DNA of 64,000 nucleotides from Podarcis bocagei (Eukaryota), in the NCBI GenBank assembly GCA_964188305.1, contig OZ076893.1, one strand, 5' to 3'. Shown here piece after piece: positions 1 to 40,537 of this stretch. The notes beneath the pieces were generated by a model. That model was not told where the DNA came from, did not search any database, and worked only from the letters and a program-made list of their open reading frames with translations. Position numbers and translations under genes: made by a program. Positions within the stretch are counted from its first letter, which is position 1. Each line of letters begins with the position of its first letter.

Positions 1-170
1 AGAAAAAGGGGGGGGGGAGGAAAAAAACCCTGCAGGAACTCGCAAGACATTTTCGTCTTGCGAAGCAAGCCCATAGGAGATTCGTTTTGCGAAGCACCTC
101 CAAAACGGAAAACTCTTTCGTCTAGCAAGTTTTCCGTCTTGCGAGGCATTCGTCTTGCGGGGCACCACTG
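1..170. mobile_element. Right end of a Tc1/mariner (pogo/Tigger-like) non-autonomous element
   Basis: Ends ...ttcgtcttgcggggcaccactg followed by TA. The sub-terminal motif cgtcttgcg is repeated. The terminus is related to the CAGTGG MITEs elsewhere in the window. Confidence 0.7.
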
Positions 171-1083
171 TATCATGAACACACTGTTGATGCAATTGGT
201 TCTCAGCTAAAGTGGGTATTGAGCACACTAAAGGTTTCTGTGGAAGTCAGAATTTTCAGGTTGTGCTATCTGTTCGGTATAAGTGGGCCTACAACAAATC
301 TGTATTACAGATTGAAGAAAGGGAGGAAAAAACAACTTTCTTGAGTAACACTGGAACTTCCTCAAATAAGACAGACAGAGGTCAAAAGCTGAAGAAGAGA
401 ATGCAGAAGTCTCTTGCTTGATCCCACTGGTTGATATGTTCTGGTAGCACAAAAGAAATGAAGTGCTGGAGGGTGTCAGAACATCTCTTGTCTGCAGAGA
501 GCTTACAAATCTTAGGTGACAGACCACTGAATGGACTTGGCTGCAGGTTGTCAGGCTCCATGAACGAGGTGGATGGGTAAGCTGGCTGTCAATCTACTTG
601 AGCCAGAATCAGGTGACTGTTCCAAAGCAGCCAGGAGTCAAGGTGCTAAGCAGGAGCTGAGAGGGCCAAAGGCAAGTGAATATAGTTGAGGCAGGGATCA
701 AATCCAATGGAACAATTGTGGAAAGAGAGCAGAAACCAAGGCAATGTCCTCAGTGAGACGTACTGAGGAGCAAGCCTTGAGGCAAGGGTTTCCTTGATCC
801 GAGTGGGCACTGATTTGCCCTTGAAATCAGCTGAGCACTCAGTCACCCGGTACTGAAGCCCAGATGGCACTCTCAATGTGCTGAGATCCACCAACCAGGC
901 TTTCAGTAGAAACAGAGTTCTGGTGATGCATGAAGTCCTGGAATCTGGGAGCCCTAATTGGAGAGACACACATCCTCCTCTTTGTGTTTTACACAAAGAG
1001 TAGGCAGCTGAGGGCTAACGGACACTGAAGAAGACCTTGGGATTTTAACTCTAAAATCAGTAAGCAACATGCACATAGCAATA

Positions 1084-1323
1084 CAGTGGTACCTCGGGTT
1101 AAGGACTTAATTCGTTCTGGAGGTCCATTCTTATCCTGAAACTATTCGTAACCTGAGGTACCACTTTAGCTAAAGGATCCTCCCACTCTCGCCGCACCTC
1201 CACCGCGTGATTTATGTTCTCATCCTGAAGCAAAGTTCTTAACCTGAGGTACTATTTCTGGGTTAGCAGTCTGTAACCTGAAGCGTCCGTAACCTGAAGC
1301 GTCTGTAACCCAAGGTACCACTG
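1084..1323. mobile_element. ~240 bp Tc1/mariner-type MITE (CAGTGGTACCT...GGTACCACTG), TA TSD
   Basis: Terminal inverted repeats with TA on both sides. Near-identical copies are at 11653 and 53102. Confidence 0.9.
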
Positions 1324-3129
1324 TACAATGTGTAGTTTTGCAATTTCTCAGTGGTGAGCTATTGGCTACCCTGATAGGTACTGATTGTTTATCAAACCTA
1401 TGTCAGTCTTAAGAAAGGACTCATTTGGATACAAAAAAGAAAGAGAAAAGGTGAAATCATCTGACAACTGTAGAAAAACAAAACCAGTTAAACATTTTGC
1501 AGCCATGCAAATGGAAAGAATATTCCCTTTAGTCTTTAATTAAGACATATGAAGCAGAAAACAAGTTGAAGTAAAGCTACTTTGAATCCTATGATGAAGT
1601 GAAATGAACGATATTTATTTGAACATTTTTATATTTTAGAAAGAGGTTAAAAAAAAAAAAAGAGTCTTACTTTTACTTTGACAGTCAAGTCATAAGGATC
1701 TGTTTAGGATCTGTTCCCACCACTTTAAAAGTTAAGTTTTGCTTCCGAAGCACTCTGAGATCTCTGTGAGTAACTTGTACACAAAATCTGAAAGCACTAC
1801 AATGAAATCCACTGCAAGGAAATATGTCGTGGAACTATTTCAAAACTTATTTGGTTAGGCATCTCCATGTTCACTTGGACATGCAAATCTTTTCCCCCCC
1901 ATAAACTTTTCCCCTGATGTTCAATGAGGTGCCATTGTTTAAACAAAAACAGTTATTCTTTATAGTCTGCTATTCTCAATGTGATGAGTCTGCCTTATGA
2001 TCCGTATAAGTTTAATTAGAAAACTATAGCTGCTTATAATTCACAAAAACTGCATAATTGAAGAGGAAGAAGGGCAACCATCCCTGAGAGTTTAAGTGCT
2101 GAATAAAGTGCTTTCAATGAAAATTTACTGTGAATGCATTTTTTTTATTTTTTAAGAAAAGCAAATCTCGAACAACTAAATGCTACTATCCACAGTTGCA
2201 ACCCTCCCAATATCGCCAGCAAACTACCAACTTGCAACTATAATTCTGGGGTTGTGAGCAGGACCTGCAATGTCCAAACTATGAGGGGGAAAAGCATTGT
2301 AAGTACTGAGAAATGACATTTTACCATATTGTATCTTCATCACTCTGTAGTCCTTTGCACCAGGGCAAAAGAGAGGGGATTCTTATTTCACCCAGATCAA
2401 CGACTTCCCAACTACACACTGTGGGTGGGAGGGGGACATGGGAATAGGAACTGGGAGTGGAAAGAACTGGAAATATGTGCTCTTTAGAGAACTGATCTGC
2501 CTTCTTCCAAAGATACACCTTTTGAGTTGGAGCTGAGCTCTTGTTATGAATATTGGTTGTATTCACAAAGGTTGCACAATTGCAACATGCCCCATTTGTC
2601 TGCAAGATACTGTAAGATTTATGCCTAGAGGAAATCAGAGTTTACCAACCAGGTGCACAGAATTCCTCTTTAGTCTTGAAATTCTCCTAGTATAGATATA
2701 TTTTGACTCTCGCCTGTTCATCTGGGGGAGGTAGCAATCGCATTCGGCAACTGGCAGTGGCAACTGGCAGCCACTATAGCTATACCCAGTATTTCCCAGC
2801 AAGCAAAATGTAATAGCCAGCTAAGGCTACAAGAAGTTGTGGCCATTACTTCTATCCATATGGAGATAGGGAATTAAATGCACTAGCCATAGACTCAACA
2901 ATGCTTCCTCAGTAAAGGAATCACAGCTTGGGTTCCAGCCATTTTCAAAAAACGCTGTCACTCTCCCCTTCCTGGTAGAAAGGGGGGGTGAAAAGACAGC
3001 AAGTGCATTATACTTTTAAAATCACAGATAGCATCACATGGGACGACCCTGCACTAACACTGATCCTGACACCATGCTGATGTGAGCACAGCAATCACAT
3101 CAGCAAGTGTTCCAGTCTATAGTGTAGAT

Positions 3130-3234
3130 TCTGCAGTTTGGTTGTGCATTGCTATGTAACTGACATACAACAGATGTACGTGATGCAGATTGCTTTTACA
3201 TTGGCTACACGGCAATGCACAAGCAATCTGCAGA
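3130..3234. repeat. Imperfect palindrome (hairpin/MITE relic)
   Basis: tctgcagtttggttgtgcattgctatgtaac pairs with gctacacggcaatgcacaagcaatctgcaga. Confidence 0.6.
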
Positions 3235-4340
3235 TTTTCACCCGCGCACACCCAGTCTTAGCTGTGCCTTAGCTGGAAAACAATTTGCAAAAGAGGATTT
3301 TAAAGCTAGTCACATAATAGGGCTTTTAAACATCAAGCCTAGCTGAAAAGCCTTGCTCAGTCCAAGGCATGCACAAAGCTGCTGTATCTAAAACCTTAAA
3401 GAATTAGCTCTGGATGATATTGCCAATATGATTACTTTAGAGTACGAAATATTCTGATCTTTATCTACTATAACATTGAAATGCTTTCTTGGTTATAACC
3501 GTTCCAGTCCTGTTTAATGAAAATGCTGCTTGTTTGTGCCCCTTCATTTCAAAGCCAAATGAACTCATTTTATTATATTTATTATACAGTTTCTTAGAAA
3601 CAATCTCTTGGCCACGCTCCAGCAAAACCAGGAAAAAGGGTAGGACTGGGCAAATGAGAAGAATGGAGCCATGCAAAGCAGAGGGGTGGAATCGACCCAG
3701 TAGTCTAGGATAGCCTTCCCCTGCCACAACTGTGCTGGCTGGGGCTGATGGGAGCTGTATTCCGAAATATCTAGAGGGCACCAGGTTGGGGAAGGCTCCT
3801 GTAGGATTACTTCCACCTCTTGCTCAGTTCCAGGTCTATCCTTCCCCTGGCTTGTTATTCTAGTAGCCATGCTGACAGAAGGTGATAGTCTCCACCACTC
3901 AGAATGACCTAGGTGGGACTGAGCCTCCATTCCCTGGTTGGACTGCATGGGTGGATATATTTTTCTTTCTCTGTAAGAATCCAGCAGAGCAGCTTCCACC
4001 ACAGCATGTCAAGAGCAGCAGGGCATCTATGGTGCTTCACAAGTAAAAGCAGCCTGAGCAGAGAAAGAAAGAAGAATCAACAGGTGCTTAGCTATCACGG
4101 ACCTTTAGGACTGGCACTGCCTCCCTTTGGGGAGGCCCTTGCAGTGGTCCTGTGATTTACAGATGCTCCTCCACTTACCCATCCAAATTGGCATTTCACT
4201 AGTATTAATGTGGAGCAAAACTATGTTATTGGTACTCATCTTGGTAATGTGAAATTTGCTATAGATAAACATGACAGATATTTGGTTTTACAAGAATTCC
4301 TTCAGTAGTATCTTCTGACTTTTTTGTTGTAGATTTAAAA

Positions 4341-4469
4341 CAAAGATAAGAAACCTCTGGCCTTCAGGATGTTGTTGGACTACAACTCCCATCATCCATA
4401 ATCATTGGCCATGCTGGCTGATGGGAGTTGTAGCCCAACACCCAGAGGGCCACAGGTTCTCCACTCCTG
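4341..4469. mobile_element. hAT-type MITE with perfect 8-bp TSD (atttaaaa)
   Basis: TSD at 4333-4340 and 4470-4477. Internal palindrome ctacaactcccatc/gatgggagttgtag. Relatives occur near 3710, 7972, 16759, 32710 and 61730. Confidence 0.85.
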
Positions 4470-4709
4470 ATTTAAAAGGTACTTTTCATCATCCTGCTTC
4501 ATTTGCTGCTTTCCCTTTTTATATTGTTTACTTGTGTGACTAGTGTAACATGTGAACCAAAATCCATGGATTTCAGCCACAGAAACATTAATGCTCTCTG
4601 AAACTTCAGATTTTCCCCATGAGATGACTAGAGTTGCTGTGGCCCAAACTATATTTTGCTCATATAAAGAAATGCAAAGTAATGTGTCGCAGCAGGAGGG
4701 AGAAACTCC

Positions 4710-4994
4710 CTGGATTCTTCAGCTTGACTCATCTCTGCCTCTTGGCCTCCTTTCTCTCTTGCTTTAGCTTTTGACTCCAATTCTGTACTTTTCTGTGCCG
4801 TAGAGTCTCCCTGCTCACTAAACCCTGTTACCTCTTCAGCTTCCGACATATCCTCCTCCCAGTCTGCTCCCTCTTCTCCCTCTGACCACTCTGGGTCACC
4901 CCACGACCAACCCCTGGGCTCTGAGCCTTCTTCCCTTGGGGGTTCCCCAGCTGGTCTCTCCCACCATTCCTCCGTGTCTAGCTAGCCCATGACA
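4710..4994 (-). mobile_element. Probable partial LTR (begins TGTCATGGG on the minus strand)
   Basis: Abrupt GC/purine-rich block starting with a TG terminus. The other end and a TSD were not identified. Confidence 0.4.
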
Positions 4995-5871
4995 TATCAA
5001 GTCTTCTTGAAAATATCTCATGACCAGATATAATTTAGTTTTGTTCCTAAAGATGGAATTCTCATTTAATCACCTTTTAGGACACCCTAGCATCACTTTG
5101 CTGCAGGAGTGTGGTTTTATAGTTCTAGAAATCATGTTCTGCACTTCAAACTGAAAATTGGGTTGAAGACCTTTTAGACCTGTACATTAAAGAATGAATC
5201 ATGTATTACAGGAAGGATAAATTTGAGAAATGTAATGCAATCTGGCAACCTTTTCTAGAATTGTTCTCTAATTGATTGTTCATCTTCTGCTGAAGTCTCA
5301 CAGTACTCAACATATATTCCCTCTCTTTCCGCCAGTTTATTATTTTCCCATTACATTAAAACTGTCTTTCTCAAAACCAACAGTTTCTGAGGAACATTGA
5401 TTGGGAAAAGATATCAGGAAGGCCCATAAATCAGGAGATTAAAAAACCCCCTGCCACCTTCAATTGCAGTATCTTCAATTGCAACATTGATGTTTCTGTT
5501 ACTCTCCTATTAATAATCCTAAAATTAACAGAATGTTGATATGGTGTGGTAAATCAGGATCTGTGCACATGGAGGGAGAACTAGATACTGCTTCTTGGTA
5601 TCTATAAGGAACCCCTAATATCTAATCTGGTCCCCTAGGAAAATGGCACAAACGGAATGTGAATTCAAATAAGAAGATATACAAATCAACCCAGCTGGTC
5701 AATTTACATCATGATTCTACATGCCAGATTGCATTGTGCTCACAGCGAAAGGATTGTTTAAACAGCGAAGTTTGCATACAAACCGCCATTTTGTCTACTG
5801 CTGCAAACCTTCCTAATACGGGTCAACCAGTGGCAGGTAGAATTTGTGATCTGTACTTGAGACAAATGCTT

Positions 5872-6016
5872 CAGATGACAGCTCAGCTGATAGAGGATGA
5901 GGCTCTTAATCTCAGGGTCGTGTGTTTGAGCCCCACATTGGGCAAAATATTCCAGCATTGCCGGGTGTTGGACTAAATGACCCTTGCGGTCCCTTCCAAC
6001 TCTACAATTCTATGAT
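5872..6016 (+). mobile_element. tRNA-Lys(CTT)-derived SINE with CR1-like 3' tail
   Basis: Head gctcagctgatagaggatgaggctcttaatctcagggtcgtgtgtttgagccccacattgggc is a degenerate tRNA-Lys. Tail is ggactaaatgacccttgcggtcccttccaactctacaattctatgat. Confidence 0.8.
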
Positions 6017-7924
6017 CCAATCATCTGGATAGTGGTGAAAAACCACCCGGCTGAAAAATACAGACACAAAGTTGCCTGTGCGAAACAACCAGTCATTTTC
6101 TCTGACTCAGCCGAGTTGTAGTTCCTCCCATTCTGAACCCAACACGTATTCATGCATGAGAAGACTATCTCAGTCCACGCAGCAAAAAACCCATTTCATT
6201 CTCCATTATGAATTAGAACACCATTTGCTTCTGCGTTTCTTCACTGTGGTTACACAGAGTTGTTTAATAGCATTACAGTGGCACAGTCTGGTTTCAATAC
6301 ATGTCCTGTTCTTTCTCCTATCACAGAACTGACTGCCAATTCTTTCTGATTACCCTTTTTCACAGAGGATGGGCCTATTCGTTCTTCCCTTGCTCCCAGA
6401 GGAAGAGGACACTTTCTTTCTCAGAATCAATGGTCTGATGGCAGCTGCTTTAAACTGTAAACTTCCAGATGGGGTTGACTATAAAGAGCAGAGCTTCGTT
6501 AGCATATTTACACTAGATTGACGGAATCTAGCCTTAACTCATCTACCTCTCATAAAGATTCTGACATTTTTATTCAGTTTGAGAAATCAAATGGAAATCA
6601 GTGGGACTCCAGCATGCCCAAAGTACTACTCAGTATACAAGAGGATTTTTCGGTATAATTTTAATGTAAGTACCCGGTACCTGTTGCATTTACATATTCA
6701 TATGCCACTTAAAAAAAAGAGGGGAATGAGAGTGATTCCCAATATGAAAAACACATTTACTTTTTTTAAAAGTCATGACCACAACCCAGGACAGAATCAG
6801 TTGAACTTAATTTAGTTAATTCAATAATCTTAAGTATTACCAAACCTGTTGGATTCTAAGTAGCCCTTAGCTAAAACCTGCAGGGGGTTGGACTAGATGA
6901 CCCTTGTGGATCTCTTCCAACTCTACAATACTACACTTATCTGAGTCTATTAAAATATACATTATGGCTGTAACAGTAAATACTTAGCCATGCTCAGTTG
7001 TAACCATGCTTAAAAGCATTTGTTCACATACATCCATTGTTACTCTTTGTTTTCCCTTTCTCAGTTGTTGCTATCAAAATTTAGACAGTAAGGTCCTTGG
7101 GGGAAGGGACTTTGCTTATGGAAATCTGCAAAATGCCATTACACTGATGGCAGTGAATTATTATTAATAAACAAGATGTACAAACAGTATATTAAGAAGA
7201 GCACACCAGAAGGAAGGGAAACACTCCTTGTGATTTGAAGGCCCCAGACTGCTGAGAGAAAACAAAACATGAACAGCAAGGGCAGCAATGGACATTGGCA
7301 TGAGGAACGTGTTTTCCCAGGACACTGTGTATTACAAGTTGTTGCCCACAACATTTCTAAAAGGAACATAAATAAATGTTTCTACCATTAGAAGTAGAAC
7401 AACAGGATGCAACATGCAATGGGTAATATTGCTTCCCTCCTTTCAGAGAGATTTCTTCACCAACCCAACGGGATTGGCTGTCTGAGGTCATCCTCACAGA
7501 AAGGCCTAAGAAAAGATGATAAGCCCTGGGAATCTTCCACTGTAACCAGTCCTTTTAAAAATAATTCAAGTAGCTGAACACACACTTTTTTTTGTATGTG
7601 CCAGTCACAACAATAATTTCCCAAATTAATCACAGACACACAATGCAAGCATTTCAGTCCTTGGTTTAATCTGATCTTGATTCTCCTGGGCAACGAAATG
7701 TCCACAGACATCAAAGCTAGACATGAGAGTTGAAAGGATTAATTGCTCAGATGTCTATAGAATTAAATCCTCTTCGGGCACTATAGTTGTAAGAAGCAAT
7801 ACAGTACAGCTGGGGCTGCACAGGAGATCAGCACTGTCAATGTGTAAGGAGCTTCCACTGAAAACACAAAGGTTCCCTCTGCAGATGTTCACTAATCATG
7901 CAAGAAGCCAGGAAAAACATAGAC

Positions 7925-8230
7925 TCTTATGCAGTCAGACCATTGGTTCATTTAGCTTAGTAATTTTTCTACAGGTATGGCATCTTCCAGATGTTGTTGG
8001 TCTTCCATCAGCCCCAGCCAGCTTGACTAACGCTCAAGACTGATGGGAGCGGCAGCCCAGCAGCATTTGAAGGGCCCCTGTTGACTACCCTTGGTCTACC
8101 TATGCTGACTGGCAGAGGGTCTCCAGGATTTCAGACAGGAGTCTTTCCTAGCTCTACCTAGATATGCCAGGAATTGAACCAGAGACCTTCTGCTTCAAAT
8201 GAAGATGTTCTACCAACCAGCTGCACTCCT
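7925..8230 (-). mobile_element. tRNA-derived squamate SINE (Squam3-like) interrupted by a hAT-type MITE (~7972-8093)
   Basis: The reverse complement matches the SINE at 51727. The inserted block resembles the 4341 MITE. Confidence 0.6.
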
Positions 8231-8524
8231 TATGGGATGAACATTAAGGCTAAGCATTGCAACCTCAGTATATCTTAGAGAAATAAAACCTGAGGTTAGC
8301 TAGTTTTCTTTGTGGATTTTAAAATAATTCATTCAGTACCTTTGATCCCCACAGGTTACAGAGCACCCATGATCAGTGGCTCCTTCCACCTATTCATGTA
8401 GAGAATGATAATAACCTCAGGCTATCCACAGGGTGGCCAAACTATACACAGAAGAAACAATGTTGGTGCAAATATCCCTGCACCACGACACACCGTTATT
8501 TGCAAGTACACCTTTCCACAACTC

Positions 8525-8746
8525 TGCTTTTGGACTAACATGCCAATAAGCAAGCACAAAAAGTCCTCATGCAGTAGTGCATGCAGTAGCCAAATGTTAT
8601 TTATGTAAAGTACACACCATCACTATTTCACAACACTTGAATTAGTGATGGCGTGTACTTTACATAAATAACATTTGACATGACCATAGGGCATCACTGC
8701 ATGAGGACTTTTTGTGCTTGCATGTTGGCATTTTAGTCCAAAAGCA
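8525..8746. repeat. ~220 bp near-perfect palindrome
   Basis: Arms of ~105 bp (tgcttttggactaa...tacacaccatcactatttca / tgaattagtgatggcgtgta...ttagtccaaaagca) surround a ~7-nt loop. Confidence 0.85.
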
Positions 8747-8772
8747 ATTTCACATGTACTATACACCTGAAT

Positions 8773-9118
8773 GGAACGTGGGTGGCACTGTGGGTTAAAC
8801 CACAGAGCCTAGGGCTTGCCGATAAGAAGGTTGGCGGTTCTAATCCCCACGAAGGGGTGAGCTCCCATTGCTTGGTCCCTGCTCCTGCCAACCTAGCAGT
8901 TCGAAAGCACAAAGTGCAAGTAGATAAACAGGTACCACTCCAGCGGGAAGGTAAACAGCGTTTCCGTGTGCTGCTCTGGTTCGCCAGAAGCAGCTTAGTC
9001 ATGCTGGCCACATGACCCAGAAGCTCTATGCTGGCTCCCTCGGCCAATAAAGCGAGATGAGTGCCGCAACCCCAGAGTCGTCCGCGACTGGACCTTATGG
9101 TCAGGGGTCCCTTTACCT
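8773..9118 (+). mobile_element. Sauria-type SINE, full length, 13-bp TSD (tatacac[c/t]tgaat)
   Basis: tRNA-like head with A/B boxes and ...cctttacct tail. TSD at 8760-8772 and 9119-9131. Confidence 0.9.
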
Positions 9119-9600
9119 TATACACTTGAATATTCAGGGAGCTTGCAACCACATGTTCATGTGGAATACATGTATATAGCAGATTACAGTGTCACAGTGT
9201 ACACCTCCTGTATTTATATTGTACACTTTTAATCCATGAAGTGTGTCCTCTGTTGCTATACAATACATAATGTGGATTATTAGTGCACAAAAGTAGTGGA
9301 ATGTAATGCTAAACTACTTACATTCTAACTTCCCACAATGTTTAAAACACACACACACACACAGGCACACTTCCACTGAGTCTAGTTTCCAGGTGCAATC
9401 TGCAAAGTAGTTACACTTCTCTAAATGGCCCTGACTATTAAAACTGAAACAGGAAACACAGGAAAGCAAAGTTAAATAGGGGAAATACTTGATTGCTTCA
9501 CAGTATGATTCTGCATGCATTTACTTGGAAGTAACTGCCAGTGTGTTGAATGAAGCCTGTTACACATGCTTACAGTAGCTATGTGTATGGGGGTTGTGCT

Positions 9601-9733
9601 CATGGGAATAGCCAGGATCTTTGTTAGGGGGGCAGGCTTTTGTTGGGGGTGGCAGAACCTCAGTTAGTGATGTGTTTTTCTTGATGGGGGAGGGGCAGCT
9701 GCCCACTGCCCCCCCCCCTTGGCTACACTCATG
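9601..9733. mobile_element. Short hAT-type MITE
   Basis: TIR catgggaatagcca / tggctacactcatg. Flanks gttgtgct / gttgtgtc form a degenerate 8-bp TSD. Confidence 0.65.
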
Positions 9734-9826
9734 GTTGTGTCAAGGGCTTCACTGAAAAGGTGGGTGTTGAGGAGGGTCTGTGGGTGCCAGACCCAAACTT
9801 GAGAAGCCACTGTAAATGCTAATAGC

Positions 9827-12071
9827 CCTGATGCTATTCCATCTGAACTGATCAAAGCCAAGCCAGAGTGGTGGGCTCCGATACTAGCAGAACTATTCAC
9901 TATGATAGATAGCTCTGGTACCATACCTAACTCATGGCAGCAATCTATAATTATCCCAGTCTTTAAAAAGGGTGGCAAAAAGCTGCCATCCAATTATCAG
10001 CCAATAAGTCTACTGTCAAACATCTGGAAATTGTATGCTAAACATCTGTTAAATAAACTAACTACTTGGCTTGATGGGAATAACATCATAGGTCCAGAGC
10101 AGGCAGGGTTCAGGCCAGGGAAATCTACAGTACTTTACGCAACTGTTTGGTGTTATCTCATTTAGCCACCAAGTACACACGGCTTCATAAAGAATGTCTT
10201 TATGTGGCCTTCCTTGATATGAAGGCTGCTTTTGACACTGTCGACAGGGGGCTGGTATGGTCCAAATTGGAGACGATTGGCCTAGAACCTAGATTACTTT
10301 ACTTGATCAAAAAGCTTCACATAAAGAACACCTGTCGCATAAGAACAACAGCAGGGAATGTAATGACAGAGCCTGTCATTATAAACAGAGGAGTAAAGCA
10401 GGGCTGTGTACTCGCTCCCTCTCTTTTTAACCTTTTTCTTAACAACCTTGCTTCTTTACTAAAACAGGTGGATGCCCACAGCCCAAAACTCAATGCATCA
10501 AGCATTCCTGTCCTTCTATACGCAGATGATGTGATTTTGCTTTCACGGACAAGAATTGGCCTAAAATGTTTGTTAAATTCCTGTATTGACTATCTGTCCA
10601 GAATGAAATTGTGCATGAACTTTAATAAAAGCAAGATAATGTTTTTTTGGGAATTCACGCAAATGTTATAGCTGGGTATTTGGTGGAAAACCCATCCAGC
10701 AGGTATTCGAATTCAACTACCTGGGAATCACATTCCATCATAGGCTTCTATGGTCCTTGCACTGTGCAATAGCGGTGAATGCCAGTAAGATGTCTACGCA
10801 GGCCATAATGCGTTTCTTTATAACAAGAGGTAATTCGCATATCCCCTCTGCCCTCAAGGTCTTCAACGCCAAAATTATAGCTCAGTTGCTCTACGGAATT
10901 CCAGTCTGGCTGCCAGGGTTTACCCAGCTAGTAGAACAAGTGCAGGCAGCTTTCCTTTTTAAGATTTTTGCTGTCCCACGTTGTGTACCCTATGCAGCCT
11001 TCTGTCTAGAGGGAGGTCAACACAAGGTAGAGAGACCGTAGCCTGGGCAAGATTTCTTACATGCTGGTTAAACATCTGCCTCACAACAGATAAAGATCCT
11101 CTCCTTAGTGAAGTTTTGCTAGATCCCTTTCTTTCCCCAGGTTTAACAATGGTTTAACATAAAGGTACAGCAACTTGGGCTGTCAGTTGGATTTTTGCGA
11201 TCGTTGTCCCCACCATCTGCCAAGGCTATAATAAAAACCAGGTTGTGGGACACTGAACGCCAGGAACTGACAGCCGCAGCAGAGAAAACATGTTCCCCTC
11301 TTAACTTTCAGCTTTCTTGGGCACATGAAATTAACCTCCATTATCTTGAATTTTTGCTTAATCCTCAGGAAAGAAGGGCATTTTCACTGGCCAGGTTTAA
11401 TTCAAATCCTTCAAACCTCCTATGGGGAAGGTTCTCGAGAATGGTGGAAGGAGAAAGAATTTGCCCATGTGAAGACCATCAGGTGGAAGCTCTTAAACAT
11501 ATGGTTCTTAAATGTAAACTATATGTTGATCTCCGCCAGCAGTTCCTTGATCAACTCTGCATCCCCAAATGGAAACCGGAGTTAGAGGTCATACGATTTC
11601 TATTACTGGGGAATAATCAGGAGCTCAGCAAGTTAGTGGCTAACTATCTTTACAGTGGTACCTCGGGTTAAGTACTTAATTCATTCCAGAGGTCCGTTCT
11701 TAACCTGAATCTGTTCTTAACCTGAAGCACCACTTAAGGTAATGGGGCCTCCCGCCGCCGGAGCACGATTTCTGTTCTCATCCTGAAGCAAAGTTCTTAA
11801 CCCGAGGTACTATTTCTGGGTTAGCGGAGTCTGTAACCTGAAGCGTATGTAACCTGAAGCGTATGTAACCTGAGGTACCACTGTATTTGGTTTTTTGTCG
11901 TCGAAACACATTGCAGACGTCTGATCTCCCTGAAGACCTAGAGATGTAATGTTAGACTGCTTTGCCTCTTTCATTTGACAAATGTTTTGTGTCACTGGGA
12001 AGGCGGTAATTCTGTATTGATTTGCTTTGGATGTCTGTATGTGATACCAATAAAAGGTTTGAGAATTGAAT
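9827..12071 (+). mobile_element. 5'-truncated non-LTR retrotransposon (RTE-X/L2-group-like), frameshifted RT plus C-terminal Cys/His motif
   Basis: RT motifs (NYQPISLL, QAGFR, FLDMKAAFD, GVKQGCVLAPSLF, LLYADD) are spread over ORFs 9902, 10147, 10757 and 11195. C-terminal motif RICPC..E..KHMVLKC. 3' end AATAAA plus gaatt repeats. Candidate TSD taatagc at 9820-9826 and 12072-12078. The clade is uncertain. Confidence 0.9.
11653..11883. mobile_element. Tc1/mariner-type MITE nested in the LINE ORF end
   Basis: CAGTGGTACC...GGTACCACTG termini with TA TSD. Same family as the 1084 copy. Confidence 0.9.
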
Positions 12072-12169
12072 TAATAGCTGCGAAGTTTTACCACGCAGTG
12101 TTTTCAAGCTTCACAGAGATCTTCAGGCAGACTTGGAAGTTTCTGACAGAACTCTGTGTGAGTTGGAAG

Positions 12170-12930
12170 ACTGCACGCTACATTATAGATGAAACTACAA
12201 CGCGCCGACTGTGTGTGTGCGCGCGCCTTATTATAAAAGGGAATAAACTGCTTTTCGAACCCACAGGCAGCGGGTGGGGAGCAGCCAGAACGGGTACGTG
12301 GAGCAGATAAGAAAGGAGAGCGGAGGAGGCGGGCAAGTGAATGGCAGCTGCAGGCGGAAGAGCGATTACTCACCGACGGTGGTGATATAGGAAGGGGGCG
12401 GAGACGGCTTGGTTGGGCAGGGCTCGGTGTATCGCCTCAGGATCGAGCTTTTCCCCACGTAGGAGTCCCCGGCCATTACTATCTTGGCCTGCAGTACTTT
12501 CTCCGGCTGAGCCATGGCCCACGAAGCAGAGAGCAGAGCGGCTGCAGCTGCTCCCGGCGCAGGACTGAACCGAAAGTTGCCCGTCGGGCGTCGCTCCTTT
12601 CCACCTCCAGACACGCGGCCAAAGGAGGGCCCGCCCTTCCTCCGCCGCCTTCCTCTCCGAAGCGTCGCCAAGCCTCGGCTTACGCGAGAGATTGGAGCTG
12701 GATTTCCCCCCAACAACAGCGGGCCGACTTCTGTTTTGCTGCTTAACTATATGCCCCCAGAGCAGGGCTCCCTGTGCCTTTGAACAGTGGTGTCTCAGGC
12801 AGAAATTCAACTGGTCAAGCTGTCCTCCCTCCCTCTCCCTCTCCCTCCCTCCGGGCTGCCTACCACGCAGCTGCTATAAGCACAGAGGGAGAATTGACAT
12901 GACGGCGGATGTGACAACCCGTTCTCGACT
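12170..12930 (-). promoter_or_regulatory. CpG-island-like promoter of the Rab-like gene, with GC box (GGGCGG, 12631-12636) and CCAAT box (12691-12695) on the minus strand
   Basis: A GC/CpG-rich, non-repeat segment in an otherwise CpG-poor window. It spans the Rab-like ATG, and the motifs are read directly from the sequence. Confidence 0.7.
12374..12515 (-). CDS. First coding exon of a Rab-family small GTPase (MAQPEKVLQAKIVMAGDSYVGKSSILRRYTEPCPTKPSPPPSYITTV-G)
   Basis: Strong Kozak context (gggccATGG), beta1 strand KIVMA followed by P-loop GxxxxGKS, switch-I YITTVG, and a consensus phase-1 donor G|gtgagt. It lies in a CpG-rich region. Confidence 0.88.
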
Positions 12931-13075
12931 AGTTGGGGGTGATGGTGGTTGTAGACTAGTCCATCCACAAGTCCTTGCGCCACAGCCCAGACTCCCAGGC
13001 ATGTGGTCCAATACTGAAGTGGCCTTATATGTTACCACTGCTCAGTGGAAAAACCCTGAAGTCCTGCTTTCCTCC

Positions 13076-13222
13076 ATCATAGAATCAAGAGAGTTGGAAG
13101 GGACCCTGCAGATCCCTGCAGTCCAACCTACAATGCAGGAATAAGTAGCTGCTGTCCCATACGGGGATCAAACCTGTAACCTTGGTGTTATCAACACCAC
13201 ACACTAACAAACTGAGCTCCCC
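13076..13222 (-). mobile_element. tRNA-Ile-derived SINE with CR1-like tail
   Basis: Minus-strand head gctcagtttgttagtgtgtggtgttgataacaccaaggttacaggtttgatccccgtatggg resembles tRNA-Ile. The tail is shared with the 5872 element. Confidence 0.7.
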
Positions 13223-14009
13223 AAGCTCCCCTGGTTATTATCTGTCTTATTAGATCATATCTAAAAGATAACGTAACAGGGGAAATGCTGGAATTGGAAG
13301 CCACGATTAGTGTGGAAATTGATTAAATCATAGGTACTCCTAGAGAATTTTTTAATTTTTCAGCTCATTGTTCCTTTCATAAGGTGGATGATGGCTAGGA
13401 CTTGGAAAAGTTGAAATGAATCACCCTAATGGTTTTGAAGTTAATGTCTAATTCTGTGTGTTGTTTTACTGGCAATAAAACATAACACAACATGTTCACT
13501 TGATAAAAGTTATGTGTCCTTATTTGGGGTTTGACAATTAATGGTAGGCAACTGAATGGCTACAGCTTCAGGTTTTTGGTTTTTTTAAATTAATGTATTG
13601 AAAACTAAAGTAGCTTAATTTCCACTCTCATTCCTAAAAAGGTTATTGGCTTTAGTTGTCCTCCTTTCACTGAGTTCTAAACTGAGTTCTGTTGTCAGTT
13701 TGGGAATCCTGTATTCTTTGTAGTGGCATAGGGGATACAGCATTCTAAACGTACATCTCCTAATTTATGAAATATTATGCACCGTGTGAGTCTCTTTCTT
13801 TCCCACCCCTCAAAAATACTCTACTTGATTTTGTACCCTTCCCTCCTGAATCTCCAGTCACTTTCCTTTTCTCTTAAACTTCTGCCTGAAAAAACCTCTT
13901 TAAGCTATTTCCAGTTTTTTTATTGTTCTGATCAATGATGTCAACTACCTGTTGACTAAATATGCTGCAATAGCAAGCAAAGGTTTTTAGGCATTGCATT
14001 CTTGTATAG

Positions 14010-26210: not shown

Positions 26211-26397
26211 TGTTAATAGCTTAAAAAGAAATAATGACTACTGATTTTGCAAAGCAGGTTATAAATCAGCCAGATATTTTCCATACATCAAAGATTCTGA
26301 CAGCAATTTATTTAGATATGTATCATTCCCGCAGAATGGTTGCAGCATGCTGTCAAATGATAACTGAGAGATCCATGTACGGACAAGGGATACATAC

Positions 26398-26555
26398 CAT
26401 ACTCCAGCTGTAGCCTCCTACAAGGTAAATGCTGTCATCAAGAACTGCACAGCCAGGACCACTGCGACCCTCTAAAATAGGAGTTTGCAAAATATTCCAT
26501 TGATCACCTTTTGGGTCATAGCATTCCACGAGCATGACATCAAGATGCGAAAAAC
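26398..26555 (-). CDS. KLHL14: KLHL14 coding exon (158 bp; FSHLDVMLVECYDPKGDQWNILQTPILEGRSGPGCAVLDDSIYLVGGYSWSM)
   Basis: ORF track 26353..26568. Boundaries are gtacag| and |gtatgt. Confidence 0.96.
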
Positions 26556-27910
26556 CTGTACAACACAATTATCAAATAATGTGAAACCACTTATTTTAAG
26601 AGAATGAGCACATGGTACTTCATCAATGACATACAAAACTTCGCCCACCTTAGTAGGTTCATCATTAAAGACTAAATTGTAAAGAACAGGAGAAAACCTC
26701 TTAAAGTAAGAAAGTGAAATACTTTCCTTTTGTCATCTTCATCACAACCTTCAGCATTGAGCTAACATTTGCTTTTTTCCTTAATAATAAACAACATATT
26801 GGCTGCCATTAGTTGCCAAAGAACATTCATGGGGAGTTACTGATATATGAGATTAGAATGTTTTTTCTACTTCATGATACCAGGAGTGAAATACCAGGAC
26901 TGAAATGTGAAGGCACTATGGAATATTTGAGCACTCCCTGCCCTTTATCTCTCTCACACGAGGCAGCTGAAGAATGGAAGAAGGAGAAATTAGAGTACAG
27001 AGATAAGGGAGAAACAATGAAAGGGAAGAAAGGTGTGTATTTTAGACAATAGTAGACATATGAGTAAAGCAAGAATGGAGAAATAATGAGAGGGGGAAAG
27101 TGGCCATTTTAAACAATGGCATAAATTTGAGAAGATCAGAGGGTGATACTGAGAGGGGAAAGTAGCAGCTTAAAACAAGATTTAAGAACAGTGAGAAGGG
27201 AGGTAGGAAAGGCTCTATAGCTTCTGTGTTATACCTATCTCCATTTCTCCTTGTTAAAGCTGTTTGTAAAAAATAAAACAAAAAACTCTCAATATTCTCC
27301 ATCCCTGCTTAACTCAAGCCTCTGCTATTGTTTAAAACTGAAATTTTTCTTCTCGGGGTCTCTCCACCCTTGCTTTACTCAAACTTCTTCCATTGTTTAA
27401 AACATGCATATTTTCTCTTTTCTCTCTTCTCATTGTACACAAGCTTCTCCTTCCATGTGTGAGAGATAAAGGATGTGGAGCCATCAAATATCCTATAACA
27501 ACCTTCACACAATGTATTTCACTTATGGCATCATGTATTGCCTCTCTTTGTTCCAGATTCAAAGTAGCAATTTAGAAGAGATAATTTATTAACAAAAAAA
27601 ACCCCAAACACCCATATATGTACAACATCCATCAACTGAACTTAACCTTCTCTAACTGAACAAGCTCACTTGACAGTCATGTTCTTAAGATTCTGTCATC
27701 TTAAAGATACAGTAACATACACCATCATAGCATGTTAGCACAAAGAGGGCTGCTGAAAAGGAGAGAGCAGGAGGGATAGAAATGGGTGGGTGGGTGTGGC
27801 CTGGATGCAAGGGAGAGTTGAAAAAGGAGAAATGAGGTGGTAGGAATGGGGATGAAAGGTGATAATGGTGTACAAAGGGAGATGCAGAATTTAAGAGAGG
27901 ATTGCTCAGC

Positions 27911-28153
27911 CCCTGCTCCTGCCAACCTAGCAGTTCAAAAGCATGAAGTGCAAGTAGATAAATAGGTACTGCTCCATTGGGAAGGGAAATGGTGTTTCCG
28001 TGTGCTGCTCTGGTTTGCCAGAAGCGGTTTGTCATGCTGGCCATATGACCTGGAAGCTGTACGCCGGCTCCCTTGGCCAATAAAGCGAGATGAGCACCGC
28101 AACCCCAGAGTCGGCCACGACTGGACCTAATGGTCAGGGGTCCGTTTACTTTT
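27911..28153 (+). mobile_element. 5'-truncated Sauria-type SINE
   Basis: Matches the 3' two-thirds of the 8773 copy. Confidence 0.85.
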
Positions 28154-28840
28154 AAGGCATGGAAATGGGGATTATCTGTGTGGAAGGGAGAAATGAGAAG
28201 AAGAGGGGGAGAAGAAAAGGGGGTGAAGGTGAAAAAGGTGCTTAGCAGTTATAAGGTGTGGGAGGAGGAAGGTGCAGGAGATTACCCTGGTGGTCGTTTG
28301 TGCAAGGTTACACGAAAGGGGGAGGAGGAGGAGGAATAGACATAGGGGTGAAGGTGAAAAAAGGTGCAAGGCAGGGTTGCAGAACAGGACAGAGGCTTCA
28401 GAAATGGGATGGGAAGATGAATAGTGAGCTTAGTAGTTACATAGAGTAGGAAAGGGAAGCTGTAGAGGGTTAATGGGGGGAGGTCAGGGGTGTTGGCAAG
28501 TGGAGCAAGCAGGGGTGTAGCCCCTAGTAAGATGAATGCAAATAATGATTTTTAGAAATAAATTTCATAGACAATTTTTGAGATGAGTGTGGGATTTTAA
28601 ATGTTGTTAAATATTACTCCTAAAATTAAGGACTTGTTTCTTTGCAGAGCCTTAGCACAGCTTCTTCTCCAGCTTGGGAAATGATTTACAGAGGGAAATA
28701 CTGTTGGCAATTTGGGTCAGAAATAATCTGTTTGTTACAGTGAATTTACGGCGATGACAAATCATCCATGCTTCTGAGTAATGGAAGTTCCCATTTTTGT
28801 ATTATCTAAAGCATTCATTACTCATTTATTTAATGTAGTG

Positions 28841-28842
<2 letters not shown>

Positions 28843-28887
<45 letters not shown>
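28843..28887. repeat. (AC)n microsatellite
   Basis: Read directly from the sequence. Confidence 0.95.
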
Positions 28888-28889
<2 letters not shown>

Positions 28890-29010
28890 TGCTGGCTCAA
28901 GGATCATGCTAAATTGTGTGGCAGGGTTTTAAACTTAGTTAACTAACCTAGCAAAAATAGTGTTTATCAAAAGACAGAATATTACATTGTTTTGCTATTA
29001 AAAATGTGAC

Positions 29011-29169
29011 CTTTCAAATGATTTCCTCCGATTGCATACAGTCGATCATTCATTACAGCCAATGCATGGATTGCTCTCTTTGTGTTCATATCTTGTTTTC
29101 TAGCCCAGACATCCATTACAGGGTCATAGCAGTACAGCCAGGGAACGTATTCACCATTGTGGACACCTC
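29011..29169 (-). CDS. KLHL14: KLHL14 coding exon (159 bp; GVHNGEYVPWLYCYDPVMDVWARKQDMNTKRAIHALAVMNDRLYAIGGNHLKG)
   Basis: Manual translation gives a kelch repeat. Boundaries are tttgtag| and |gtcaca. Confidence 0.95.
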
Positions 29170-29271
29170 CTACAAATCAAATATACCTTCATTAGTTAAA
29201 GGAAGCACCCCACCTTAAAAGAATAACTGGGTTTTGTTTTGCGATGAAGGGGAGTTTAGAAAACAACTTGC

Positions 29272-29462
29272 CAGAAATATAGATTTTGCCATTATGTACA
29301 GCTCCTGCATGTGCCGCCAAGGGCTGTGGTAGGGAAGATACATAACGCCATTCATTTGTCTCTAAATTATAGCATTCCACACTTGACAAGTATCCAGTCT
29401 CATTTCTCCCACCTATCACATACAAGTTTTTGTCAAGCCGACAGGCATAAAAACTGGCTCTC
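29272..29462 (-). CDS. KLHL14: KLHL14 coding exon (191 bp; RASFYACRLDKNLYVIGGRNETGYLSSVECYNLETNEWRYVSSLPQPLAAHAGAVHNGKIYISG), ends at a GC donor
   Basis: ORF track 29192..29425 contains the kelch peptide. Acceptor is ttctctag|. The only frame-preserving donor is TCTG|gcaagt. Confidence 0.95.
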
Positions 29463-29794
29463 CTAGAGAAAAAACAAATAGAGCAGTTAGTTTCTAGTGA
29501 CTAGAATTAATTCCATCATTCTGTCTTACAGAACTTATCACCTGCTATTCTAACATGAATCCCCCCACTCATTTATCCCTGAGAATATGGGTGACTTTCC
29601 CCAAAAAGGTTGCAGTGCACTCCCAACTCGGACCACTCCCCACCTCCCCACCCCAAAGTATCACCCAAAATTTCCAAAAGTATTCACTTGTAATGATTTC
29701 TGGATTATCCATTGCAATTTCTTATTTACAAAAAAGGAATCATTAGGAAAAATCAAAATGCCAACATCATAATGACTTTATGGAGCAGCTACAT

Positions 29795-29930
29795 ATGGAA
29801 TACAAAAAAGATAGTGTGGAGTTGGAAAATGTACCAAAAAGGCAACCAAAATGACCAAGGAGCTGGAGCAACTTTTCTACAAAGGAAAGTTAAGAATTGG
29901 GGCTTATTGATTTCAAAAAAATGCAAGCAA
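29795..29930 (+). mobile_element. Old CR1 LINE ORF2 3' fragment
   Basis: Degenerate coding similarity to the CR1 segment KKD..ELE.VQKRATKM.K.LE.L.Y. Confidence 0.55.
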
Positions 29931-32900
29931 GGATGGTGTGTGCAGAAAGGAGACAGAGAGAGGATGTAGGGTGTTTTGCGGGTATTTGGGGAGTTTATCT
30001 TACATATAAGTTGCTTGGGCAACAGCATTTGTTAGTCCTGGCAGTTCAGCTTTGGAAAGTGGACACTTAAAAAGGTCTAGGTGGTGCTTGATTGAAGGCT
30101 ATTGTGAACCAGCATCCTCTGTGATATCACAAGGGCTCATGGGGCACACTCCTCCTAGTATGCCTGATTAGAGGATCTGCAGGATTCTGGAGTGCATCCC
30201 AATGTTCACCCACTATATTGCTCCCCTTACTAGATGTACTTAATTATTAGGTCTAGAATTGTTCTGCCTCGAGCAACTGCTTGGAATACTTGTTGCATTG
30301 GTTCAAGTCAGTTCACACCTATACAGGGGGTTCCAGGGCATGCACACACAAAGACATTCACATGAAATGTCTGATTCGTTCTTTTTACTGCAGATGCTCC
30401 ATACACAAGATGCTGAAGAGAACTTGGGCGCTCCTGCTCATGTTGACCTCAGTGTGTCCAGTGGCCTATTGGTGAACTTGGGTTTGTGACTGGACTGTGA
30501 AACGATTCCCTCTGAGCATTCTGTGTGTAGTCTTTCAGAAGAACAATTTATGTAGTATTGTCAATTACCACACAATCACTTGGTGAAGCAGAAGTTTAAC
30601 TTAAAAGCAATTTTATTGGCAGTGAAGATTTAAGCAAGAACTCATTAATGTTTAGGATATTTGGTTCCATGGAAGGATAACAGCTACTCAGTAAGATAAA
30701 GTAAAAAAAAGGGGGGAGGGGAAAGATAGATAATGTAACAATAATAAATTATCTTGACATTCACTTTCTTTATAGTCCTTCATGGGTCATTGTTCCCAAT
30801 TTACTAAGAGAACCACATCATCAGATTTTTTTCTTCAATTATCATTTTTTTTCTTTTTTCTGCACTACTGCAAATAGAACAACTTTCCTTGTATTACATT
30901 CTTGCCATCCAACAAAGGTTTATCCGGCTAACTCTCAACAAAGTTTTGAACATCTTCTTAGTTCTTCCAGGGCAAGGAATCAGTATTTATGGAGACTGTC
31001 TTACCATGCTGTGCTTTCAAGTCATTTTTAGTACAGTACTCCTGAACGATCTATTTCTAAAAACATAGGAGACACTTCATTTCCCACACAACCATGAAAG
31101 CACCTTTGAGCCTTGCAACAAAGTCCATTTTTAGTCCAAATATGTTTTCTAGCAAATGTAGTATATATTTCCTTTTTAACAGGATGTTGAGGCCATGAGC
31201 ACTATCAGGATCACGGCCAACGTGAGGCCACTGAGAAACACAAGAGAAATCTCAGCATGTTGTGGGAAAGCCCTGAAAGTTTGCAGAAGCACAAGAAGTC
31301 TTTAAAAAAGACAACTTAAGACAAGCAATCTTCACACAAAAAAGCACTCTCCAGCTCAATGAGGATTTGAGGATTGAGCATATCAGAATAGGGGAGGAGT
31401 GGAATGTCCTAACTGGAGACACTAGTTAGCTAGAACCCTGAACAGAAGCACTCCTATTAGGAAGGAAGATACACCTCAACATTTTATTGCAGGTTCCACT
31501 GGTTACTTCTGCATAGCAGCTTTAAGATTTGCATGTGAACATGCAGGGACCCACTTCCTTGAAAGATAAAGAGTACTGTTAAAATGCTCTTGGATTTGCA
31601 GTGACTCAGGCTCTCTCTCAGAAATGCAAAGTTCTCTTCATGTTATGTGTGTATGCATTACTTTGCACACATCAGTGTCAATCATTTATTTGCTCCTTCA
31701 GTATGAAAGCTTTACTTAATACCAAGTGAATTTAAAAGGTTATGAATAAAACACTTTATTATCCTGTGAGAAATATGTATGTGAGACATATGCTTATTTT
31801 TTATATTAAAAAGATATGTTTTAACTATCCACATTGAGTCAGATTATTTAAAACTTCATCTGATGGAGGTTATGTCTGTGTGACTAAGAGAATAAATGTT
31901 GTTTTCCATCTCAGCTATCTTTAGAAACAAGTTTCCTCATAAATGTATCCTCTATGTGCATTCTTGACTTCATCCACATAGTGTCACTGTTAGGAGCAGA
32001 AATGTAACAGTCAGCCTGCTTCATTCTTCAGATTAAATGTGTATTTTATGGGCAAACTCCCAATAGTAAAGATTTTAAGTTTCCCTTATCCTTCTTTTCC
32101 ACTAAATAAATTACACTTGAGCCATAGAGCTCTAGTTAATTAATGTAAAATTTAATTGCTATAAAAAGTCCTCCATGATAAAATATTGCACTAAAAATTC
32201 AGTTTAGAAAAGAAATCATCCCCTCATATACATCTAGTCCTGAGAAATATATTGCCATCTCTAGTAAAAGAAATTACATCAAATTACTCTTGTGGATCAG
32301 GATATTAGTCCAGCTACAGGTCCTGCAGTGGCTTGTGAAAAGTCTCTGCGATGAACTTAGCTAAATTTTACAATGCAGTTACATGGGAAAAGTAAAAGAA
32401 ATTCTTTCCCGATCCCCAAAGGCAATGAATTTATGCCCTGAATCTTGAAGTTTGATTATCAGTCTTAGATTGAAAAGCTACCAGAGTTATTACTGATCAT
32501 ACCAATGCCAAGAACCCTTTTAGAGAGACCCTAAAATCAGCTGAAGTGATTTTAATCAAAAAAATATATGTTATGTAATTTGACAAATTAGTCTTTCTTT
32601 GCTTTAGCGTGAACAATGAAAAGTGGGTATGCTGGAATATAGGAGAATGCACCTGCATAGACTATTGGTGAGACTTTCTAGAAAGCTCTGGAAAGAAGAC
32701 AGCCAAAGAGAGCTACCCTCCAGATGTTGTGGACTGCAACTTCCATCAGATCCAGCCAACATAGCCAATGGACAGGGGTGGTAAGAGTTGTTGTCCTCAA
32801 TATCTGAAGGGCACCACATTGGCTACCCCATCTCTGGAAGATTAGGAGCACAGGATCCTGCCAGTTAAGTGCAGTAGCAAGTTTTACATGATGAGAGGGC

Positions 32901-33329
32901 AGAGACAGCACCTTCCCACTTAGTTCACTTCTCTGACCGTGAGAGAGAACACAACCAAAACCTAGATCATGACCTTCTAGACAATCTCCTGCTGTAGGGA
33001 CAGAAGCCAGGATGTGTTGCTGAACACACACCTGTTACAGGGAAACAAGTCTAAACCCCACATTCAATCTAATGGAACTATACTGCTCCACCAGATTAAA
33101 TAGGGGGATAAGGAAGCTGCTCCTGGAGAAACATCTGGAGAAAATCACAGCTGGAGGAGTCCATGAGGATGCTTTTGCCTCAAATATCATCTTTAGGACT
33201 TTGCCACTGTAGTTTTTGCAGGTATAGCTGTCAAAGTCAGCCAGGGAATATGAGAGTCCATTTGAGATTTCAATGACATGCTTTATTATCTGGACTTATG
33301 GTAAGGGATCACTTGCGCAGTTCCACTAG

Positions 33330-33890
33330 GACATCACCTCACCATCAACCTGAGTCTAGAACACACTGTGCAAGAGGTTCACTTTCTGGACATGAATGTG
33401 CAACTATTAATGGACATATAAGCACATCCTTATATAGGAAACCTACTGACTGTTACTCGTACTTACATGCTTCCAGCTTCCACCCAGAGCACACTAAAGA
33501 GTTCATTGTTTACAGTTGAGCTCTATGATACAACAACATCCATTCAGATTCATAGGACTGGGCAGAGCCTCACAACAAAAATAATTCACATCAGACACCC
33601 AAAGTGAAAAATCAGATCAACAAAGCCAAACTGTTCTTAGGTACCAATCTTCTACACAACAGATCTAGAACAGAAAATGACAAACTACCACTTGATGTCA
33701 CAACAGCCAAGCCAAAGCCACTCAAGCCTATCATCAATGATCTACAGTTCATCTAGTTCACTTCCCACACATAAGCCGTCAGTGGCAGACCTCCAGTTGC
33801 TCTCAGACAACCCCCTAAATAGGACAGATACTCAGCAGCAACAGTGGGCCATACAAGAGGTATGGACACAGGGACCAGCTCCCTATTAAA
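33330..33890 (+). mobile_element. Decayed Penelope-like element (RT thumb/linker)
   Basis: Peptide GHISTSLYRKPTDCYSYLHASSFHPEHTKEFIVYS is the PLE YRKPT...YLH..S.HP signature. It is disrupted by stops and frameshifts. Confidence 0.8.
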
Positions 33891-36800: not shown

Positions 36801-37305
36801 TATGGTGGGTGGAGAAGGTTCAGGACAAAGGGAGAAAGGTACCACCTTTGGTACCTCTCATCTTCCCCAGTGCGCTTCTGCCAGCTTCTTCTACCACCTG
36901 ATTATATGGAGTGGGCAGGTACAGGACCTAGCGGGTGCTGCCATTACCAGCCTAAGTGACCAAAAAGGCAAGGAATGGTTGCTCAGCAAATGCATGCTGA
37001 AATTCAATGAAAGCAAAGCAAAAACATAATAGAAAATAGTAATTGTGAAATAGTTCAGAGATTTGAAAGAAACACTGTTTCTACAATTCTATGAAAAGGA
37101 TGTAGCAGTTCAGCTTTTACTTGAAAGTACCTTCTTGTCAGCAGAAAAATAATCTAGCACTATTATATTTTATTTGCTAGTGCAAATCAATTTCAACACT
37201 TTCACCATTCGCTTTTTTCACCGCTAAGTTAAACCCCAACCATCTTCCTCTCTTAGGTAAAACAGCCACCCTTTCCCCAACCCCAAATATATAGCAAGCA
37301 TTTAC

Positions 37306-37384
37306 CTCTCTTGCATGGGTGGAAGTTGTATCCAGCTGTTAAATCTAGGATCATACCGGCTAACAAAGTTTGTACTGTGCTTTC
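37306..37384 (-). CDS. KLHL14: KLHL14 coding exon (79 bp; KHSTNFVSRYDPRFNSWIQLPPMQER)
   Basis: Kelch YDP...W...PPM motif. Boundaries are ttacag| and |gtaaat. The frame is continuous with the flanking exons. Confidence 0.96.
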
Positions 37385-40300: not shown

Positions 40301-40537
40301 CTGCCCATGGAGAGGAACTAGAACGTGTACACAGAGTTGAAATGGTCTCTAAACATAAAATTGGCCTTAAGTGTAGTATACAAATGGCTTCAGCAAGACC
40401 TTAAAAATACCTGACTGTGTATATGATGCTGTGTATCTCTTCTGCATGACATAGCTCTCTAGAACTGCAGCCTTAGAGTTTTAATGGAACTTTGCAAGAA
40501 CAAAACTAAACTGCTTTAATCAGTTTTATTGATCTTG

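Follow-up and report, generated by a model that had tools for sequence, protein, structure and literature searches.

Exon 1 of an expressed Rab10-like gene in the lizard Podarcis bocagei and the loss of a guanine-contact Phe among its tetrapod orthologues

Rab10 and its divergent relative

Rab10 is a much-studied trafficking switch with roles in recycling and ciliogenesis, and it is one of the main substrates of LRRK2, the Parkinson's-disease kinase. Rabs are marked by the RabF motif set (IGxDF, KLQIW, RFxxxT, a YYRGA-type motif, and LVYDIT), and the region between helix alpha1 and switch I (RabSF2) serves subfamily-specific partner recognition. Rab24 and Rab36 have Tyr at the P-loop position equivalent to Ras G13, and Rab42 has a Pro-rich insertion before switch I; these proteins belong to separate Rab subfamilies, unrelated to the clade described here, which is nearest to Rab10. 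In Ras, Rac1, and Cdc42, the F28L substitution produces fast-cycling enzymes through a weaker contact with the guanine ring, and the fast cycling of Rac1 F28L has been explained by residue 28 making less contact with the guanine ring (PMC9029563).

The window analyzed here, a 64,000-nt stretch of contig OZ076893.1 of Podarcis bocagei, contains on its minus strand a coding exon that a preliminary description had interpreted as the start of a Rab protein with unusual residues around the nucleotide-binding site. The assignment to the Rabs is borne out by its motifs, by Rab10 as the best match, and by the modeled fold. A word search limited to the exon returned two 203-aa proteins annotated as 'ras-related protein Rab-10-like', P0001 from Podarcis lilfordi and P0002 from Lacerta agilis, to which exon 1 was 98% and 94% identical, respectively. 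The window encodes residues 1–47 only, and residues 48–203 are read below from these orthologues in other lacertids. Exon 1 alone is too short a query to classify: its Pfam Ras (PF00071) score was 17.8 bits with a cut-off of 21.6, its best Pfam matches (Roc/Ras) were below cut-off, and its best PDB matches were Rho6/Rab39B at an E-value of about 0.01. The full-length orthologues carry precomputed PF00071 matches. Sequence scores against the PDB ranked Rab10 first (197.7 bits), ahead of Rab8A (177), Rab3A (173), and Rab1. An AlphaFold model built from 51 orthologues adopted the canonical Rab/small-GTPase fold (pTM 0.75), and the best Foldseek match was human Rab10 (5szj; E 1.5e-21, 52% identity), with the best 50 matches consisting entirely of Rab, Ypt, or Sec4 chains.

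In the alignment of 51 orthologous sequences (A1), GxxxxGKS/T, T46, DTAGQE, NKCD, and ETSA were invariant; the window itself covers only G1 and the G2 Thr of the motifs G1–G5. The RabF motifs took the form VGIDF, KLQIW, RFHTFT, FFRGA, and LVYDIT in P0001, P0002, and the A1 consensus. The C-terminal prenylation motif, which is encoded outside the window, was CCKL, CCxx, or CxC in the orthologues; in A1, C200 did not vary and C201 was conserved to at least 90%. Apart from the best sequence and fold match, the family shares with Rab10 (human structures 5szj and 5lpn) switch II, the RabF motifs, NKCD, ETSAK, the C-terminal CC, and a similar number of coding exons.

Full-length searches recovered orthologues from squamates, turtles, crocodilians, birds, frogs, a salamander, caecilians, and the coelacanth, and also from sturgeon, paddlefish, gar, bowfin, and bichir. 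In contrast to Rab10, no mammalian or teleost orthologue was found among the best 120 matches of either full-length search, and the mammalian and teleost matches listed were of Rab10 or Rab3 type. In a maximum-likelihood tree, the Rab10-like sequences were united in a single clade (100/99) whose stem measured 0.98 substitutions per site, with branching inside the clade following species-tree order, whereas the branches of canonical Rab10 were short (0.02–0.17). This clade grouped with Rab10 against three of four outgroup rows (Sec4/Ypt2-type and human Rab3-like) with support of 95/99, for an outgroup sample that was small and left out vertebrate Rab8 and Rab13; the fourth row, a long Rab3, was placed among the Rab10 rows. 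By its separate clade, its 0.98 stem, and its 52–53% identity to Rab10, the family falls outside the canonical Rab10 orthologue group, and canonical Rab10 is present too in amphibians and ray-finned fishes. Because the clade is separate and long-stemmed and because it coexists with canonical Rab10 in those animals, we read the gene as an old, divergent paralogue of Rab10 rather than as its orthologue.

The tree accommodates a split from vertebrate Rab10 as well as an earlier one. At the corresponding loci of P. lilfordi and L. agilis, a CABIT-domain gene of GAREM type (883 aa) lies downstream of the Rab10-like gene on the same strand, and human RAB10 adjoins GAREM2. This neighbor is a lead toward the gene being a 2R ohnologue of RAB10, an idea that the tree speaks neither for nor against. 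Full-text literature searches by gene names, neighboring genes, and Rab10 ohnologues found no description of the Rab10-like paralogue, and searching Klopper et al. 2012 gave none either. The gene, already annotated in databases as 'Rab-10-like', is little known and apparently undescribed in papers, as far as these searches found.

Exon 1, its transcript, and its surroundings

The coding part of exon 1 occupies positions 12374–12515 of the window (minus strand), as delimited by the open reading frame and its translation, orthologue identity, exon length, and RNA cover. It runs from Met1 (ATG at 12515) to Val47 and ends with the first base of codon 48, and its length of 142 nt (47 codons plus 1 base, phase 1) is equal in P. 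lilfordi and L. agilis. The exon/intron junction, G|GTGAGT, is a consensus donor, with the GTGAGT of intron 1 at 12368–12373 (minus strand, phase 1). The coding frame had previously been taken to run on to 'VGE', but these codons are intron read-through, and the exon ends at 12374.

Public RNA data of the same organism were aligned to positions 11900–13050. Two transcript contigs (X1, 1165 nt; X2, 1119 nt), together with five raw RNA-seq reads (X24), spanned 12373 to 12704/12739, left the genome at 12373, and gave zero cover of the adjacent intron. The loose ends of these reads and contigs past 12373, when reverse-complemented, read GIDFEVKTIS, the residues with which exon 2 of the orthologues begins, and the coding letters of the window, including the Pro32 codon, matched the RNA contig. 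Because RNA reads and contigs splice into exon 2, and because orthologues have an exon 1 that is 94–98% identical, this stretch is a real, expressed, spliced exon and not a chance open reading frame. The 5' untranslated part of exon 1 (12516–12739, minus strand) is about 190–225 nt long, based on contig ends at 12704 and 12739. Exon 1 and the promoter-proximal region are embedded in a CpG island (12200–12740), with a GC content of 0.58–0.65 and a CpG observed/expected ratio of 0.8–1.03, compared to 0.40 and 0.22, respectively, for the whole window.

In the 5'UTR, contig X2 differs from the window by four extra letters, CCTC, after 12638 and by C in place of G at 12701; as contig X1 has neither, these differences are likely polymorphisms. 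Just upstream of the promoter, at about 13050–13230, is a SINE-like element derived from a tRNA. RNA reads at 11900–12055 have loose ends on both sides and look as if they stem from repeats rather than from the Rab gene. Many sauropsid annotations of the gene include in-frame isoforms in which exon 4 (P0020, P0035, P0045, P0120, and P0069) or exon 5 (P0050 and P0063) is skipped. Skipping of exon 4 removes 30 residues with NKCD and skipping of exon 5 removes 34 residues with ETSAK, and from these deletions we would predict that the annotated products could not bind guanine nucleotides normally.

In P. lilfordi (locus L001) and L. agilis (locus L002), the gene has six coding exons across 34–35 kb, with exon lengths of 142/61/139/90/102/78 nt in both species and an intron 1 of 14.1 kb and 11.75 kb, respectively. 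Across six squamates, exons 2–5 were equal in length (61, 139, 90, and 102 nt), and length variation was confined to exon 1 (136–160 nt) and exon 6 (78–84 nt). A motif search and tblastn detected none of exons 2–6 within the window, which holds exon 1 only. The window and L001 are colinear, with 92–96% identity, and tblastn together with this colinearity marks positions 1–12373 (minus strand) as part of a repeat-rich intron 1. Because window position 166 corresponds to L001 position 23152 and exon 2 begins at L001 position 24297, exon 2 should be located outside the window, about 1.0–1.3 kb past its start. Thus, exons 2–6 are missing from the window because intron 1 is long, not because of gene loss.

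Within intron 1, a LINE reverse-transcriptase open reading frame is present at 10147–11671 (plus strand). A Rab G5-like fragment at 5338–5258 (minus strand) aligned to residues 144–168 of P0001 with 44% identity over 27 residues and an E-value of 2.9, followed by an immediate stop; it may be the relic of an old exon copy, chance is the probable explanation, and we rejected it as a candidate exon on that ground. Kelch-repeat exons of a KLHL-type gene (26356–41346, minus strand; Pfam Kelch_1, E-values down to 5e-18) lie upstream of the Rab gene in the same orientation. Runs of N occupy positions 44711–45026 and 60246–60872.

The P-loop, the pre-switch-I loop, and selection

The P-loop (G1) motif GDSYVGKS is encoded at 12447–12470 (minus strand) and aligns with GDSGVGKT of Rab10. 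Translation of the minus strand upheld the Tyr that had been noted at the Ras G13 position (Tyr19, codon 12459–12461, minus strand), where Rab10 has Gly. Gly occurred at this position in 0 of 40 orthologues, which together displayed 10 different residues (C, S, D, E, N, L, Y, F, H, and W). Most sauropsids have Cys; agamids, along with some of the birds and turtles, have Ser; geckos have Asp or Glu, snakes Phe, skinks His or Tyr, and Lacertidae Tyr. Outside the sauropsids, frogs have Asn, Asp, or Ser, one caecilian has Trp, and sturgeon and bowfin have Leu. Tyr was limited to lacertids and one skink. Ordinary Rab3-type proteins from the same search had Ser there. As the position is non-Gly family-wide, highly variable, and Ser in Rab3-type proteins, Tyr19 is, by this survey, the residue that lacertids have at a site under loose constraint and not a specific fast-cycling substitution, which weakens the earlier proposal that it acts like a change of Ras G13.

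Between helix alpha1 and switch I lies a Pro/Ser-rich loop (residues 30–41; 12393–12428, minus strand), in which HMMER alignment revealed a 5-residue insertion compared to Rab10. In the Podarcis exon, 22 residues separate Ser23 from the switch-I Thr46 (G2; 12378–12380, minus strand), whose column was invariant in A1, compared to 17 residues in Rab10; the preliminary description had likewise counted 22, against 17 in Ras/Rab1. The absence of an aromatic residue at the position of Ras F28 was confirmed as well, as residues 30–42 contain no F, Y, or W and the position of the Rab10 Phe is taken by Pro (P34 or P39, depending on the side from which one counts). The exon also encodes two PxxP motifs and PPSY (residues 40–43; 12387–12398, minus strand). 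The Tyr of PPSY, Tyr43, is the conserved switch-I aromatic, equivalent to Ras Y32 and three residues before Thr46.

Of the 40 orthologues, only those of Latimeria, Acipenser, and Amia retained the guanine-stacking Phe, and the loop of the coelacanth, sturgeon, and bowfin proteins has 17 residues with Phe at its canonical place. The residue, which is the Phe of DAF in Rab10, was gone in all tetrapods sampled. In amphibians, the loop is 16 residues long, and the place of Phe is mostly taken by Ile, Leu, or Val. Sauropsid loops are 17–24 residues long (0–7 more than Rab10 before switch I) and rich in Pro, Ala, Ser, and Thr, without a fixed sequence; in three sauropsids (Anolis sagrei, Euleptes, and Pelodiscus), the loop is back at 17 residues. 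PPxY was present in 2 of the 39 orthologues with a complete loop (Podarcis, with the motif both in the window and in P. lilfordi, and Vipera), L. agilis has PPTSY at this place, and the number of PxxP motifs varied from 0 to 2. In A1, the flanks RRYTE and SYI were conserved and S42 was at least 90% conserved. Conservation among orthologues had been suggested as a check on all three features, and the outcome was divided: the loss of Phe is common to all tetrapods sampled, but neither the P-loop Tyr nor PPSY is conserved.

We calculated pairwise NG86 (Nei-Gojobori) dN/dS from the exact coding sequences of six squamate loci. The ratio was 0.14–0.32 for the whole gene and 0.07–0.22 for the G-domain core (residues 11–29 and 42–178). 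For loop codons 30–41, with 12 codons per pair, the values were noisy, ranging from 0.4 to 4.9 with a center near 1. These ratios indicate that the gene is under purifying selection and that the sequence of the inserted loop is unconstrained and roughly neutral. In the AlphaFold model, which had likewise been suggested as a check and returned the canonical fold, residues 34–47 had pLDDT values <50, and the inserted loop of sauropsids is probably disordered or flexible. PPSY is, on the distribution given above, a by-product of loop drift.

Competing readings and nucleotide exchange

We place the probability of our main reading, which covers the identity of the gene and treats the three features as traits of clades or products of drift, at roughly 80%, a figure from which kinetics are excluded. 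By this reading, the stretch is the first coding exon of a six-exon gene, transcribed and spliced, that encodes a divergent Rab10 paralogue and is old enough to be present in ray-finned fishes, the coelacanth, amphibians, and sauropsids. The protein retains all the elements that a Rab switch requires (GxxxxGKS/T, the switch-I Thr, DTAGQE, NKCD, ETSAK, the RabF motifs, and the C-terminal CC), and it is most likely a prenylated GTP/GDP switch that is bound to membranes and serves a trafficking step like that of Rab10. In this view, two of the oddities, the non-Gly P-loop and the loss of Phe, are clade-wide, and the third, PPSY, is noise.

The preliminary description went further and proposed a fast-cycling Rab that is independent of GEFs, in which Tyr19 and the loss of Phe were selected for nucleotide exchange and the PxxP/PPSY stretch recruits SH3 or WW proteins. 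The absence of Phe from all tetrapod orthologues, the fast cycling of Rac1 with F28L-type changes (PMC9029563), and the presence of PPSY with two PxxP motifs in the window are consistent with this proposal. The variety of residues at the P-loop position, with Ser in Rab3-type proteins, argues against selection of Tyr19 for exchange, and the docking function is unsupported: PPxY is missing in L. agilis and in 37 of 39 orthologues, the PxxP count varies down to 0, the loop is about neutral, variable in length, and modeled as disordered, and the Tyr of PPSY is the switch-I aromatic. We therefore regard the proposal as a whole as very unlikely. The insertion might instead be a functional specificity or regulatory element, in which phosphorylation of Ser/Thr-Pro sites tunes effector, GDI, or GEF binding by lineage, and its position next to switch I, its persistence in some form in most sauropsids with a constant enrichment in P, A, S, and T, and the conservation of its flanks fit such a role. 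With zero conserved motif inside it, a return to 17 residues in three sauropsids, a dN/dS near 1, and low model confidence, however, we think this role unlikely.

The unusual residues could also be damage in a decaying or non-functional copy of the gene, as might be supposed from the absence of exons 2–6 from the window and from the long branches of the family compared to Rab10. The other exons simply lie past the window edge, however, the transcript is spliced correctly, and the catalytic and prenylation motifs are invariant in the 51 orthologues. With a core dN/dS of 0.07–0.22 and a transcript that is expressed and spliced, the gene is not decaying. On this combination of selection and RNA evidence we rejected a pseudogene, a reading to which we give almost no credence; the dN/dS comparison proposed earlier as a check spoke against decay.

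In the reading we prefer, the fish orthologues keep the Phe, those of amphibians have exchanged it for aliphatic or polar residues, and those of sauropsids have the variable Pro/Ala/Ser-rich loop in its place. Loss of the Phe would weaken nucleotide binding and raise intrinsic exchange, as proposed by analogy with F28L in Ras, Rac1, and Cdc42. The family resembles these F28L variants, as well as the natural fast-cycling GTPases RhoU and RhoV, in the lost or weakened aromatic–guanine contact at residue 28 (PMC9029563). It differs in that the fast-cycling enzymes are Rho or Ras proteins with measured kinetics, and in that they have Leu or Tyr at this position, whereas the Podarcis protein has Pro within an insertion. 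The amphibian orthologues, with I, L, and V among the residues at the place of Phe, are a closer analogue of F28L. A residue of the insertion, such as the ring of a Pro or one of the scattered F or W residues (some species), or else the P-loop aromatic of lacertids, snakes, and skinks could stand in for the lost Phe. Judging from these parallels, GDP release clearly faster than that of Rab10 has a little under an even chance, and true independence from an exchange factor is improbable. That non-mammalian tetrapods have a natural fast-exchanging, largely self-activating second Rab10-type switch, which would be the first in the Rab family, is a tentative idea with the odds against it.

A sister gene of Rab10 kept by most non-mammalian bony vertebrates, which mammals seem to have lost, would be of interest for comparative cell biology and for interpreting knock-outs in Xenopus, chicken, and lizard models. 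Loss of the Phe in nature, under purifying selection, would offer a clean test of how far Rabs depend on the guanine contact. The fish, frog, and lizard proteins are directly comparable, and if the proposed effect of Phe loss is true, the orthologue series would amount to an evolutionary titration of nucleotide affinity. The details specific to lacertids, Tyr and PPSY, appear to be drift at the level of the lineage, and it is the family-level loss of Phe that merits attention instead.

A further point of comparison to Rab10 lies in switch II, outside the window. T78 of P0001 is invariant in the 51 orthologues and aligns with Thr73 of Rab10, the switch-II site phosphorylated by LRRK2; from this alignment, the Rab10-like paralogue could be an LRRK2 substrate.
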